Sequence record: NC_031039.1
Length of the DNA: 64,000 nt
Strand: one strand, 5' to 3'
Below, piece by piece: positions 23,292 to 42,687 of this stretch. Below the pieces are notes generated by a model. It did not search any database, was not told where the DNA came from, and was given only the letters and a program-made list of their open reading frames with translations. The stretch's first letter is position 1; every line of letters begins with the position of its first letter. Made by a program: the position numbers and the translations under genes.

Positions 23292-23293
23292 TA

Positions 23294-23331
23294 AATAAAG
23301 GATAGAGACTATTTAGTCTTTATCCTTTATT
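23294..23331. terminator. Bidirectional terminator between convergent operons
   Basis: AATAAAGGATAGAGACT...AGTCTTTATCCTTTATT then poly-T. Confidence 0.8.
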
Positions 23332-25099
23332 TTTTTTTTGTATACTCAAAGACTAAATTTCCACAATCCCAAATTCTATCATAACCAGCTTCTCTCATAA
23401 TTTGAATTTCTGTTTTATCATTACTATAAATTTCTGGAAATAATTCTTTTAATCTTTGTTTTCTATAGTTGTATCTATGTGAAAGACTCAATTTATTTTT
23501 ATTAAAATACCAATAATTTGGCTGAGAGTTATGCATAAAGTGAAAGCTATTTTTATGATATACATTTCCTTCTGACCATCTTAAATCAGCATATGTTATG
23601 ATTTTATTCCAATCATAATTCTTTTTAAAATAACTGAATAATTTTCCAAAACTACCTATTACATTATAGTCTCTTTCTGTAGCAAATCTACTTAATTCAT
23701 AGTCATATTTATTCCCTTTTTGCCCTAAGCTAACTCTAGGTTTACAGAATGTCATTACTGCTACTAACTCATCACCCTCATTCCTTGGATACCATAGTCC
23801 TAGTTTAATAGTAGAGTTATCAGATCCTTGAATATGATTTTTATCTAAAAAATCTCTTTTCACATTATTCTGAATTTCTTCTATATAACATTTTCTAGCA
23901 TATATTTTTTCTCCATTATTTAAACCTAAAATATGTTTTATCTTTCCCTTTATAAGTTCTTTATTATCAATCCACTCATTCTCAAATAAATGAATTAATC
24001 TTATACCCTTTTCATTACATTTTTTCAATTTATTTAAATGGTAGTTTCTATCTTTTCCTTGAGATTCACCATGCCAATATAAACCGTTATATTCAATTGC
24101 TATTTTCTTTGAAGGTATATAAATATCCAGTTCTAAACCTTCAAGTATTTTTCTGTCTGATAGAATTACATTAGTGCTATTGGGGAGAATTTGTTTAATA
24201 TAATCATATAATTCAATCTCATCTTTTGAATTATGTTTCTTTAGTTGACATCTGGGACAATCTCTTTTAACTTTTTTACCTCTTGAATTACCATGTAAAA
24301 TATCGACCGGTCTAACCTCCCAAGAATAACCACATGAATGCTCAATAACTATTGGAGTTTTATTATTAATATATCTACTCTTAATTGTATAATCATTACT
24401 ATTAAATATTCTATAAAAATCTTCTTTAAAACCATTAGATCCTTTATTTTTTGGTTTTTTATTACATATATTACACCTTTTTCTTTTTAGGAAATTAGTT
24501 GGTGTAATAAAGAAATTATGAGAATCACTAGTATTGTGTCTCATCTCAATTTTATCTTGAGAGCTAATATATTCTCCTAATACAGTATATTCATCTCCTA
24601 CTAAATCATATACTTCTTTAATAAACATTTCAGTAGTCTTTGTCTTTTTCCTTTTTATTAGTTTCTTAGTACAATCAGGACATCTTGAACCCTTACTGAG
24701 AAAGTCATTAGGTCTTTTTTTAAATTCCTTATTACAGATGTTATGTCTAAGTAATACTAGTTTAGAACTATTAATATATTCTCCTAATACAGTATATTCA
24801 TCCCCTACTAAATCATACACTTCTTTAATAAACATTTCAGTAGTCTTATTTTTTCTTTTAGATATTCTCTCTGATTTATGTAAAGGACATCTATTACCTG
24901 CATTTAAAAAGCCATTTGGTGTGACATAGTATTCATGACTGCATTTTTCATGTTTCATTTTTATTTTATTATTAGTTCCAGTATATTCTCCTAATACAGT
25001 ATATTCATCCCCTACTAATTCATACACTTCTTTAATAAACATTTCAGTAGTCTTCTTTTTAGGCAAAACAATCATCCTTTTATATAAATTGGATTTCAA
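23327..25099 (-). CDS. Free-standing homing endonuclease-like protein (zinc-ribbon repeats + PD-(D/E)xK + Hef-like C-terminus)
   Basis: Repeats KTTEMFIKEVY.LVGDEYTVLGEY..H..C...RCP.C; ELDIYIPSKKIAIEYNGLYWH; C-terminal YELSRFA..YADLRWS..IWDCG. Confidence 0.75.
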   Translation of the reverse strand: MKSNLYKRMIVLPKKKTTEMFIKEVYELVGDEYTVLGEYTGTNNKIKMKHEKCSHEYYVTPNGFLNAGNRCPLHKSERISKRKNKTTEMFIKEVYDLVGDEYTVLGEYINSSKLVLLRHNICNKEFKKRPNDFLSKGSRCPDCTKKLIKRKKTKTTEMFIKEVYDLVGDEYTVLGEYISSQDKIEMRHNTSDSHNFFITPTNFLKRKRCNICNKKPKNKGSNGFKEDFYRIFNSNDYTIKSRYINNKTPIVIEHSCGYSWEVRPVDILHGNSRGKKVKRDCPRCQLKKHNSKDEIELYDYIKQILPNSTNVILSDRKILEGLELDIYIPSKKIAIEYNGLYWHGESQGKDRNYHLNKLKKCNEKGIRLIHLFENEWIDNKELIKGKIKHILGLNNGEKIYARKCYIEEIQNNVKRDFLDKNHIQGSDNSTIKLGLWYPRNEGDELVAVMTFCKPRVSLGQKGNKYDYELSRFATERDYNVIGSFGKLFSYFKKNYDWNKIITYADLRWSEGNVYHKNSFHFMHNSQPNYWYFNKNKLSLSHRYNYRKQRLKELFPEIYSNDKTEIQIMREAGYDRIWDCGNLVFEYTKKK

Positions 25100-25129
25100 C
25101 TATTATTTTGTTTAGTTGAAATCCAATTT
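25086..25129 (-). promoter_or_regulatory. 17-bp inverted repeat whose 10-nt loop is exactly the late promoter AACA-N6
   Basis: Arms 25086-25102 and 25113-25129; minus-strand loop AACAAAATAA followed by TA. Confidence 0.6.
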
Positions 25130-25145
25130 GTTTATCAATAAAAAA

Positions 25146-28100
25146 TTATTCTGAATATATTTTACCAATTTCTCGTTTAAGATGTACTAATGCTTTGTTT
25201 AAATATAGAGCATTATAAATATCAACGGTCATGCGTGAAACGATACTTAATGGACTCATAATGGCTTCAATGTTCTCATCTGGATCATTCTCACTAAAAG
25301 GCTCTTGATCTTTAGGAATAACATCAGATACAATTGTCTTAAGTGCTGTATAATACGTAATCTTATCTCCAATACCAAGTTCATCATCATACTCAATATA
25401 AATCTCAATGAGTAGTCCATCTACCTCAGTACCTTTAATTTTCTCACCTGATTGCTTTTGAATAGGTTTAAGATTAACAGAAGTCAGATCATTAGTAACA
25501 GACTTAATCTTATCTTCTTTCTTCTTACTATCTTTAATATAGTTCTTCAGAATCTTTTGTACTGAAGGAGAAAACTCACTGATATCCTTATTGTAATACA
25601 TTACAACATCTACAATCTTACCAGTATATTTAGAACTTACCTTGTTCTTAGATAACTCATTAATAGTCTCATTAAAGTCATCTCCTAGTTTATCTAAGAG
25701 TTGGTTGAGTGATTTATCTTCAAAGGAGTTTTCAAAGATAATCAATGGATCACCAGTCTTAACCATATCGCCTTTCTTAACAATAAAGTCAATGTTTGAG
25801 TTAACTCCAAGAGCAAGTTCTTTCTTCATAGTAATTTTAGTAGATAGGTCTTGAGATAAGCTTTCTGTGATAATACTACTATCTTCATACGTGTAATCTG
25901 CGCTTGCTAGTGCTACTTTACAAAGCTTCCCTGTAGTATACGTGATATCATCTTTCTTATCGCCAAGGAAGTAACTTGGATTCTTCGCTAGGATATCATC
26001 TTTTTTGAATTTCTCTCCTACTTTGATAATGAGTTCTTTACGATTAGCAATGTAAACAATTATCTTCCACCAAATTCGCTAGTTTTGGTGCGCCCTCTAA
26101 CGGACTGCTCCATGTTACCATGAAGTTGAGACTATATCTTCAAAGTTCCCTGTTTCCCAGTATACATAAATAAAAGTATACCAGATTTCATCTCAGAAAC
26201 CTGCCACCAATCGCTTGTGGGGTACTCTACTCATCTTTATTAATAAGATTTTCGATAGTCGTTGAACGTTCTCTATTAGTTTAATAGAGCTTCGCTTCTG
26301 ATTATCCTTTTAATAAGGACTTCCCAGAAATTAAAGGAATTTAACGTGAGCCTTTAAACCCACCATTACTATTCTTACTCATATGCTCGGAGAGATCAAT
26401 GACGTCTTTCTTACCATCATTATAACGAACGACAGCTAGTTCATGTTCTTCATCTATGGACTCTAGAACCCCATCTTTTTTTGCTCTAAACACAAAGTCG
26501 TCACTTAGAATATAAGCAACAGTCTTCTCTACACCACTACCAAATAGAGGTTTAGATTGCTTTGTGGTAGGAATGATCGTTAACTTCCATTAGATTCGCT
26601 ACGTCTAATGCGTTCTCTTATGAACTGCTCTATATTTCTATAGAGACGAGACTATATCACTATCCTTATCTATTAAGGATAACCCCCATTTCCATTTAAG
26701 GGATTCTCACCCACTCCAATCGCTTGAGCCGTACTCCTATTGCGGAATTTCACCGCTACTCACAATCCTAAGATTGCTTTCGGATAGTCGTTGAACCTTA
26801 CTCATAAAGAGTCTTGGATGCTGATTGCCCATATATCCTTTAGATTGTTACACTTTGGTACTAAAGGCTTTAGGATTTTCCAGCAGTTAAAGGGTTTTGC
26901 TAGCAATATTACTACTACTAGGCACGAATCATGCTTTTGCTGCGTTGTTTGCATTCCAACGCGCGGTGGGTCGGCATGACGAGCAGTAAAGGAGTTTAAT
27001 AACTCTGCCGGACCATAGATATTTGTCGTATTATTTTTTGTATTTGGATTGGTGTCTAAGAATCCTCGTGTGTTTTTGAATGCTGGATCAAAAGTTAACT
27101 GTCTAACCCATTACCTTCATATAGGTTCGCTACGCCTATACCGTTCTCTTATGAACTGCTCTATGTTACCATAGAGATGAGACTATATCTTTATCTAGTC
27201 AAAAAAAAAAGAAAGGAGATGACTAGATATCTCCCATTTCCATTTAAGGGATTCTCACCCACTCCAATCGCTTGAGCCGTACTCCTATTGTGTGTTAACC
27301 ACTAAAGGATAGTCGTTGAACGTTACTCTCGTTATAATTAAAAATAATTTATAAAACCGTTTTTCTCAGCAATTTCTTTTCTAAAAGTAATTGCTAGTTC
27401 TTTAGCTTTTTCAAAACCATATTTATTGACTGCAAATGTTTTAATAAATTTTTTATGATTAACACGGATTTCAGATTCCCATCTATTTTTCTTTTTAGAA
27501 TATCTTATTCCTTTAATTCCAGAAGTATTATCGTTTCTTAGTGATGTATTTCTATTATTCATCATTTGAGAAACCTCACGCAAATTACTTTTTCTATTAT
27601 TTAAACTATTTCTATCTATATGATCAATTACATTATTATTATCTTTAATATCCATTAGGTATCTATGAAGCTTTCCACCTGAATTACTTGAAATATAAAA
27701 TGAATTATTTCTTTTAGACCAGATAGCTCTCCAAACATGCTTATTTATTTTATCAATATCTTCAATATCAATTTGAGATTTTACGATACCATATGTTTTT
27801 GAAAAAGTAACTAATAATGCATGATCATCTAATACTTCAATAAAATTATATGCTCTTTTTCCTTCTTTTAATGTTTTCATAGCTATACGCTCACTATAAT
27901 CTCCATATAAAACTTCTGAATAATGTGCAAGGGAATTTGATTTCTTTTCTTTATTATAGAAACTTACTCTCCATAATTTTTGTTCTTTTAGATATATTAT
28001 TTTATTTTTTTCCATAATAGTAGCTCTCCTTTTTAACTTACTACTATTATAATATATATTTAACGAGAGTCTTCGATACGGATTGTCCTATTATTAGGAG

Positions 28101-41718: not shown

Positions 41719-42687
41719 TTGGGAGGAAATATAACAATGAAAAAGGTTTTATATGCAATAGGAACACCATTAGGAGAAACTGGTAAATTTAGTTTTATAC
41801 CTAATGCCAATAATGATGGTCCAATGTTTGTTGAAGATAAAGAAAAATTGATTAAACTAATTTCAGATGATCCAGTAGCTTTTGATACATGGAATATATA
41901 CGAATTTCCAGTGTTAGTGCATGACATAGACTATTATAGTGATTTTAGAGAAAAATCTTCTTTTACTTTAAGAAAAAATGAAAAATTTACTTGTTACTAT
42001 AATAGTATTACTAAAGAGTTATTATGGAATTTTAAGCCTGATGAATTATTATGTGGAAAACCTGTTAGAATAACGATTTTAGATAATCCTAGAATTATTA
42101 ATGATAAAATAATCAATGACAATACCAATTATACTTCAAGAATTTCAGAAGATATTCTTGAATTTAATTTCGATTTATTTATGAAAGTACAAAGAGAGAT
42201 TTATTTAAAATATGAATTAAATACTAAAGATGAAGGAATTCACTTAACTGATAGATATTTTATGCAAATCTTTGAAGAGATTCATGAAGTAAAAAGAGAA
42301 GAAAATGATATGAAGGTAATAGAAGAAATATTAGATATTGTTATGTACCTCGGAAGTACATATTGCACATTTGATAAAAACCTAATTGATCATGGTAAAA
42401 AAGTTTTTGTCAAGAAAGGCTATGAATATGGTTTTACTAAAAGAGATATTCACACTTTAATGGATAGAGTATCTTCTAGTTTAATGGTTGTAAGACGTTT
42501 GTATCCAGAAAGAAAATGGCATAGAAAGAATAGTAATACTATTGAAAACAGAGATAAAATTGCTATGGATACAATTAGAGAATTAATTTGGGAATTATTA
42601 GAATATGTATTATTCATTAATCTAAATGGATTTAATGGTGTTATTGATTCTATGATGATTACTAAGCAACTAAAAAATCTAAAATAA
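41719..42687 (+). CDS. All-alpha NTP pyrophosphatase (dimeric dUTPase/MazG-like) fused to an N-terminal domain
   Basis: EEIHE...EEILD metal-binding pair, RKWHRK, C-terminal KQLKN. Confidence 0.6.
   Translation: MGGNITMKKVLYAIGTPLGETGKFSFIPNANNDGPMFVEDKEKLIKLISDDPVAFDTWNIYEFPVLVHDIDYYSDFREKSSFTLRKNEKFTCYYNSITKELLWNFKPDELLCGKPVRITILDNPRIINDKIINDNTNYTSRISEDILEFNFDLFMKVQREIYLKYELNTKDEGIHLTDRYFMQIFEEIHEVKREENDMKVIEEILDIVMYLGSTYCTFDKNLIDHGKKVFVKKGYEYGFTKRDIHTLMDRVSSSLMVVRRLYPERKWHRKNSNTIENRDKIAMDTIRELIWELLEYVLFINLNGFNGVIDSMMITKQLKNLK

Follow-up and report, generated by a model that had tools for sequence, protein, structure and literature searches.

The stretch of DNA analysed here (the window, 64,000 nucleotides of sequence record NC_031039.1) corresponds, on the plus strand and with 100% identity, to bases 124001-188000 of Bacillus phage AR9 (KU878088), so that a window position is the AR9 position minus 124000. 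Our subject is the 70-nt gap between the stop codon of g189, which encodes the N-terminal part of the virion RNA polymerase (RNAP) beta, and the ATG of g188, which encodes a free-standing Hef-like homing endonuclease. Both genes lie on the minus strand, and the gap holds a 44-nt inverted repeat in whose loop sits the core of the published late promoter of g188 (P188), a promoter of the non-virion RNAP (nvRNAP).

A mapped late promoter within a perfect inverted repeat

The arms of the repeat (AAATTGGATTTCAACTA at 25086-25102 and TAGTTGAAATCCAATTT at 25113-25129) are perfectly complementary over 17 bp around a 10-nt spacer, and the pairing reaches 22 nt if two mismatches are allowed (25081-25102 and 25113-25134). 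The RNA hairpin folds with -26.4 kcal/mol (z -5.6), a value equalled by 0 of 200 shuffles, and the DNA hairpin with -15.2 kcal/mol (z -7.6), again with no shuffle folding equally well. First-order Markov-chain shuffles of the genome produced one or two perfect stems of at least 12 bp, and none longer than 12. The inverted repeat is genuine and not attributable to chance, complementarity and fold statistics agreeing with a preliminary description of this DNA that had reported the perfect arms and their loop.

On the minus strand the loop AACAAAATAA is followed by TA, with which the downstream arm opens, and the two together give AACA-N6-TA, as that description had noticed. The match (AACAAAATAATA, 25112-25101) conforms to the late consensus 5'-AACA-N6-T(A/G) of the non-template strand. 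The motif alone proves nothing, because its bare form is not enriched (the window has 74 occurrences where 83 are expected, and the whole genome 412). The start predicted at 25101 is borne out by the published differential RNA sequencing (dRNA-seq) map: Table S3 of Lavysh 2017 (mBio, PMC5312081) gives g188 a late start at AR9 149101(-), which is window 25101, classed as Primary, with a 26-nt untranslated region and a step height of 43, and the upstream sequence printed there agrees with the hairpin. P188 is a real and already published nvRNAP late promoter, with its start mapped exactly at the predicted base and, as expected, with the endonuclease ATG directly downstream. It is a full-consensus promoter of ordinary strength, and it shares with the nvRNAP late promoters described so far (Lavysh 2017; Sokolova 2017 NAR; Fraser 2022 Nat Commun) the consensus AACA-N6-TA/G, the start at A and late kinetics. 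Expression of g188 rises from 2.74 to 99.4 and 400 reads per kilobase per million (RPKM) at 5, 20 and 40 min (Table S4, Lavysh 2017, PMC5312081); g189 is late too (RPKM 0/24/390, late start at AR9 155790; same study). The word "hairpin" occurs 0 times in Lavysh 2017 (PMC5312081), hairpin or cruciform promoters are not discussed in the AR9 nvRNAP papers, and uracil-dependent initiation by the purified enzyme in vitro was reported for P007 and P077 only (Sokolova 2017).

Only the first base of the downstream arm precedes the start of P188; promoter-made mRNA therefore lacks the 5' arm, as had been foreseen, and is unable to fold into the hairpin. An 856-nt contig from a late RNA sequencing (RNA-seq) library bridges 24982-25835 across the hairpin, which indicates that read-through molecules carrying both arms and continuing into g188 exist. 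Such contigs can include contaminating DNA; the same run has a joint from 26054 to 26356, with 301 nt skipped, that is consistent with the splicing of one annotated group I intron of g189, and the run therefore contains RNA.

Table 1. Features at the junction of g189 and g188 (window coordinates)
Feature	Position	Strand	Remarks
g189 last exon (virion RNAP beta, N-terminal part)	25146..25829	-	stop codon 25146-25148; late gene
Cassette-specific spacer, g189 stop to hairpin	25130..25145	-	16 nt
Hairpin 5' arm in RNA sense, AAAUUGGAUUUCAACUA	25113..25129	-	only on read-through transcripts from g189
Hairpin loop AACAAAATAA, 10 nt	25103..25112	-	P188 positions -11 to -2; AACA at -11..-8
Hairpin 3' arm	25086..25102	-	T25102 is -1 and A25101 is +1 of P188
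g188 late transcription start P188	25101	-	published dRNA-seq
Spacer AUAUAAAAGG, hairpin base to AUG	25076..25085	-	10 nt
Shine-Dalgarno-like AAAAGG	25081-25076	-	abuts annotated g188 ATG
g188, free-standing Hef-like homing endonuclease, 582 aa	23327..25075	-	ATG at 25075
Mobile cassette: endonuclease gene, Shine-Dalgarno sequence, promoter hairpin, spacer	23340..25145	-	about 1.8 kb; in AR9, PBS1, Internexus
Classical bidirectional terminator	23293..23332	.	common to g187 (+) and, in endonuclease-free relatives, RNAP beta gene

Hairpins at AR9 gene ends and the starts that overlap them

A survey of every perfect inverted repeat in the AR9 genome, with stems of at least 12 bp and loops of 3-20 nt, returned 86 hairpins with stems of 12-21 bp, against the one or two seen in Markov shuffles. 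Most of them stand at gene ends: 68 of the 86 have a gene stop within the 60 nt upstream of them, where random positions give 7%, and 69 are intergenic, where random positions give 10%. Their sequences are unique, and their loops mostly measure 3-7 nt. Of the 81 hairpin/gene-end cases, about half have no U-rich tract behind the hairpin when read in the direction of the upstream gene, and one may ask by what means the two phage RNAPs terminate. The g188 hairpin resembles this class in its perfect 17-bp stem, its intergenic position and its location 17 nt past the g189 stop; it differs in its 10-nt loop, in having no U-tract, in the promoter that it contains and in being missing from an endonuclease-free relative.

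Strong hairpins stand at most 80 nt from 27 of the 118 published late starts, usually in the order hairpin, then start 12-70 nt further on. Four same-strand starts fall inside the hairpin of the upstream gene, namely AR9 149101 (g188), 205185 (g239), 209515 (g246) and 212165 (g251). The last three precede ordinary genes (hairpins 205177-205208, 209496-209535 and 212146-212184; locus L013), and they show that P188 is not the only late promoter of AR9 to be nested in a 3' hairpin. One of these promoters, P246, is strong (height 698) despite its non-consensus AACT. A further four late starts come from two divergent promoter pairs that are palindromic (42089/42129 and 89691/89725), each start belonging to an outward-facing half; at AR9 42089-42129 and 89690-89726 the arms of the inverted repeat are themselves the promoters, with starts at, or at most one base from, both outer ends.

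The exact register of P188 is rare. The whole -11 to -2 core forms the loop of a long perfect hairpin in one of the 118 mapped late promoters, P188 itself, and a motif core lies entirely in a loop twice in the genome, where 0.31 cases are expected. The second case, at AR9 66586-66639, has a perfect 19-bp stem and a 16-nt loop, with AACA-N6 followed by the TA that opens the 3' arm; Table S3 (PMC5312081) has no start at the predicted 66622, and one at 66651, 12 nt beyond the hairpin. The intron endonuclease g190, which resides in the same host gene g189, has its early start at 28042, inside a 10-bp minus-strand hairpin (arms 28050-28041 and 28023-28014); the start is the ninth base of the 5' arm, and the A and U of the AUG lie in the 3' arm. 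Both endonuclease genes at g189 thus have a start-in-hairpin layout.

Origin and relatives of the endonuclease cassette

Phage Goe21 has neither g188 nor the hairpin, and 9 nt stand there in place of the ~1.8-kb stretch; the g187 homologue, the classical bidirectional terminator and the RNAP beta stop directly adjoin each other in this order. Homology between AR9 and Goe21 stops after the T-run of the terminator (23339) and restarts exactly at the g189 stop (25146), and the 1.8-kb difference consists of the endonuclease open reading frame (ORF), its Shine-Dalgarno (SD) sequence, the promoter hairpin and the 16-nt spacer. A metagenome scan for relatives of the last exon of g189 gave two, one of which (L014, 77-78% amino acid identity) has the stop, a classical bidirectional terminator and a convergent gene, and no endonuclease gene; a search of IMG/VR found no relative of this exon. 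The joint absence of hairpin and g188 from Goe21, together with the terminator-only layout of L014, argues that the element belongs to the inserted cassette. Judging from these two sequences, the endonuclease-free arrangement is likely ancestral. The insertion left g189 1.8 kb away from the terminator it had used, and the cassette brought a hairpin of its own to the original place. In AR9 the old terminator now ends g188 transcripts. It also contributes to the coding sequence: at 23327-23339 the last four g188 codons and the stop are built from the T-run and the 3' arm of this g187 bidirectional terminator, the ORF end of the cassette being supplied by the host terminator.

The 44-nt element is identical in AR9, Internexus and both PBS1 records, while the flanks differ. 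A distant-mode BLAST search of the element against 50,697 phage records gave matches in AR9, PBS1 and Internexus only, and among the distant g188 homologues in IMG/VR none has an AR9-type promoter hairpin. Two of these homologues can be mentioned as anecdotes, not as evidence. L011, an unrelated viral contig (1402-1507; IMG/VR UViG_3300007777_000026), encodes a homologue that is 38% identical to the nuclease domain of g188, and upstream of this gene a perfect 22-bp hairpin (19-nt loop) runs right up to AAAGGAATG, its SD, a layout resembling a hairpin set against the ribosome-binding site (RBS); the homologue on L010 has an ordinary terminator upstream. As for the occurrence of the cassette outside the sequenced phages, four food-fermentation metatranscriptome runs (one study) contain part of the stretch, and the one that was aligned has ~98% identical contigs over parts of g188/g189 (24004-24443, 25172-25841). 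A PBS1-like phage with this endonuclease gene is therefore present, and probably active, in Bacillus food fermentations.

The endonuclease has three tandem N-terminal CapR/treble-clef zinc modules (Pfam CapR homology, treble-clef zinc finger). They are encoded in the 5' part of g188 (24566-25060, minus strand) by three tandem 207-bp repeats, which give near-identical modules (KTTEMFIKEVY.LVGDEYTVLGEY...). One RNA-seq contig has a joint that skips 207 nt within these repeats (24774 to 24982), most likely an assembly collapse of the repeat. At the start of the gene, the annotated ATG (25075) touches the SD-like AAAAGG with zero spacer; an in-frame TTG (25066-25064, minus strand) lies 8 nt past AAAGGA, the usual Bacillus spacing, and the true start of g188 may therefore be codon 4.

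Possible roles of the element

We consider it somewhat probable that the element acts at the RNA level, as a 3'-end hairpin for the polymerase mRNA with the endonuclease promoter nested in it, the whole being carried by the cassette. The 44 nt would then be a compact control region of g188. At the DNA level, the loop and the TA that follows it serve, as the published start mapping shows, as an ordinary consensus late promoter for the nvRNAP. At the RNA level, the full 17-bp hairpin arises only on transcripts arriving from g189, at the place where AR9 genes usually have a 3'-end hairpin. It may replace there the bidirectional terminator that the insertion separated from g189, as a leaky terminator or as a 3'-end stabiliser, and RNA that reads through carries a very stable stem 10 nt ahead of the endonuclease AUG. 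The mRNAs of the nested promoter start within the 3' arm, with no hairpin and an open 26-nt leader. The net effect would be to uncouple endonuclease expression from the polymerase mRNA and to limit the cost of the insertion to g189. With 70 nt between the two genes, a promoter and a perfect palindrome can most simply share their DNA if the non-palindromic promoter core is placed in the loop.

The predicted accessibility of positions -14 to +12 fits two classes of g188 mRNA, being 0.60 in promoter-made RNA and 0.35 in read-through RNA, a difference that ranks 7 of 66 late genes (median difference 0.065). Translational damping on read-through RNA is plausible from such predictions rather than demonstrated. 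A first fold had suggested an extended helix over both SD and AUG, which was abandoned when partition-function analysis with controls gave a modest and window-sensitive effect that one window length abolished.

A number of observations weigh against this RNA-level interpretation. The preliminary description had suggested that in RNA the hairpin ends or stabilises read-through from the RNAP beta gene, and the position of the hairpin indeed fits the 3'-end class, but the U-tract of an intrinsic terminator is lacking: the 8 nt after the hairpin (AUAUAAAA) include 2 U, a content near the bottom of the class of 86. Nor is the stem G+C-rich, with 24% G+C (4 G/C of 17 per arm). We infer termination or 3'-end stabilisation at the hairpin, and the RNA data that bear on it are assembled contigs, a form in which RNA ends and coverage steps are not displayed. 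As for translation, 10 nt separate the main stem from the AUG, with the SD unpaired at a probability of ~0.75; what further pairing covers the AUG is weak, changes with the folding window and engages g189 coding sequence that ribosomes would open. Since g189 is itself late, a temporal gate of the T4 kind has no obvious purpose here. The 100% identity of the element in AR9, PBS1 and Internexus means that covariation offers no evidence for the hairpin. Finally, the g188 paralogues (g146, g147, g079 and the one in the g265 region) have mapped late promoters and no strong hairpin, so that the hairpin does not characterise this gene family.

The layout itself has precedents. A promoter nested in a hairpin is documented for homing endonuclease genes of T-even phages, among them I-TevI, I-TevII, I-TevIII, segB and Aeh1 mobE (Edgell, Gibb and Belfort 2010, PMC2988022). 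There, as at g188, the endonuclease gene follows a host gene and has a late promoter of its own within a stable hairpin, so that its own transcripts cannot form the structure and read-through transcripts carry it whole. Unlike in the T-even cases, the main stem at g188 sequesters neither the SD nor the AUG, the upstream gene is itself late, which leaves no early-to-late gate, and the polymerase is a template-strand-reading multisubunit nvRNAP, with a different type of promoter and with the promoter core in the loop. Because the RBS sequestration of the T4 family is lacking, we speak of a likeness of layout and not of strict membership. The closest T-even analogue described in PMC2988022 is seg43(25) of Aeromonas phage 25, with a very stable predicted hairpin just upstream of the RBS, which it excludes; phage, endonuclease family and polymerase differ from those of g188, and the passage on seg43(25) mentions no mapped promoter in its hairpin.

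It might be thought that promoter and hairpin overlap without regulatory meaning, the g188 promoter and a 3'-end hairpin (or terminator) that serves g189 having simply been squeezed into a 70-nt gap, with a trivial loop register. We regard this as a possible but rather unlikely explanation. It would agree with the spacing of the 27 pairs of late start and hairpin, which forms a continuum from starts 70 nt past the hairpin to starts inside it, with the number of starts inside hairpins (8, against about 5 estimated for uniform placement, hence no enrichment), with the ordinary genes that follow the other three nested starts, and with the modest translational masking predicted for g188. Against a meaningless overlap stand the two cases of a motif core wholly in a loop (0.31 expected), a 10-nt loop that is unusual for the class, the presence at one host gene of two endonuclease genes that both start in hairpins, and the fact that the hairpin moves with the cassette. 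Far less credible is the idea that the inverted repeat is a protein operator, by which the endonuclease represses itself or another dimeric phage protein occludes P188. T4 intron endonucleases such as I-TevI do bind operators overlapping their own promoters, according to PMC2988022, g188 has three tandem DNA-binding modules, and its promoter is flanked by two symmetric half-sites. Yet half-sites are usually far shorter than a perfect 17-bp arm, the hairpin fits the genome-wide class of unique 3'-end hairpins, the arm is found nowhere else in the genome at up to 2 mismatches, and the likeness to the empty site of Goe21 scores 12 against a shuffle mean of 12.3, a weak test in that the true homing site is not known. 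With an arm unique in the genome and no above-chance likeness to that empty site, the operator was rejected as the principal interpretation.

The preliminary description had gone further at the DNA level, proposing that cruciform extrusion pre-melts P188, in parallel with phage N4, whose promoters are likewise presented on an extruded DNA hairpin. The N4 virion RNAP, a single-subunit, T7-like enzyme that needs gyrase and single-stranded DNA-binding protein (SSB), uses hairpins in which a stem of 5-7 bp carries a 3-nt loop with conserved bases, and starts downstream of the hairpin; P188 has a 17-bp stem, a 10-nt loop and a start inside the stem, and the parallel is an analogy only. We judge it improbable that a cruciform under negative supercoiling, or a fold on transiently single-stranded replicating DNA, pre-melts P188 by offering template UUGU and non-template AACA single-stranded in the loops to an enzyme that reads the template strand. 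The attraction of the model is that the nvRNAP recognises its promoter in single-stranded template DNA and initiates there specifically, as the preliminary description correctly held (Sokolova 2017, whose authors call the biological role unknown), that the N-terminal domain of gp226 also binds single-stranded non-template AA(C)A (nvRNAP literature), and that a loop with 90% A+T is flanked by arms through which both strands fold with about -14.5 kcal/mol (DNA parameters). The model is at odds, however, with the occurrence of this geometry in a single mapped late promoter, and with the hairpin at AR9 66586-66639, which has the same loop register on a 19-bp stem and no mapped start at 66622. The cruciform, costed with DNA parameters as the difference between two hairpins and the duplex, is estimated to require +18 kcal/mol even without the junction, which places it at rank 72 of 86, among the costliest, because of the 10-nt loop. 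Extrusion would moreover lock template bases +1 to +16 in the stem and rearrange the upstream duplex that the enzyme contacts, P188 is of ordinary strength for a full-consensus promoter, and the nvRNAP is active on linear duplex uracil-containing DNA without hairpins (Sokolova 2017). Cruciform pre-melting is thus unsupported, and the earlier interpretation, taken as a whole, is partly supported. Were the DNA-level model true, it would give the first natural role to the specific start of AR9 nvRNAP on single-stranded template DNA, in a mobile endonuclease cassette with a self-melting promoter, firing wherever it is inserted and whatever the local duplex stability.

Because P188 was already published, the gain is modest: what is new is the hairpin-promoter unit as part of the endonuclease cassette, together with its assignment to a class of 3'-end hairpins spread over the whole genome. 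The ~86 perfect 3'-end hairpins, four of them with late starts inside, are useful for the annotation of transcription units in PBS1-like phages. The element is also a ready-made natural template for testing the in vivo use of single-strand promoter recognition by the nvRNAP. A jumbo phage with a non-canonical RNA polymerase has arrived at the layout by which T-even phages accommodate selfish endonuclease genes behind essential genes.

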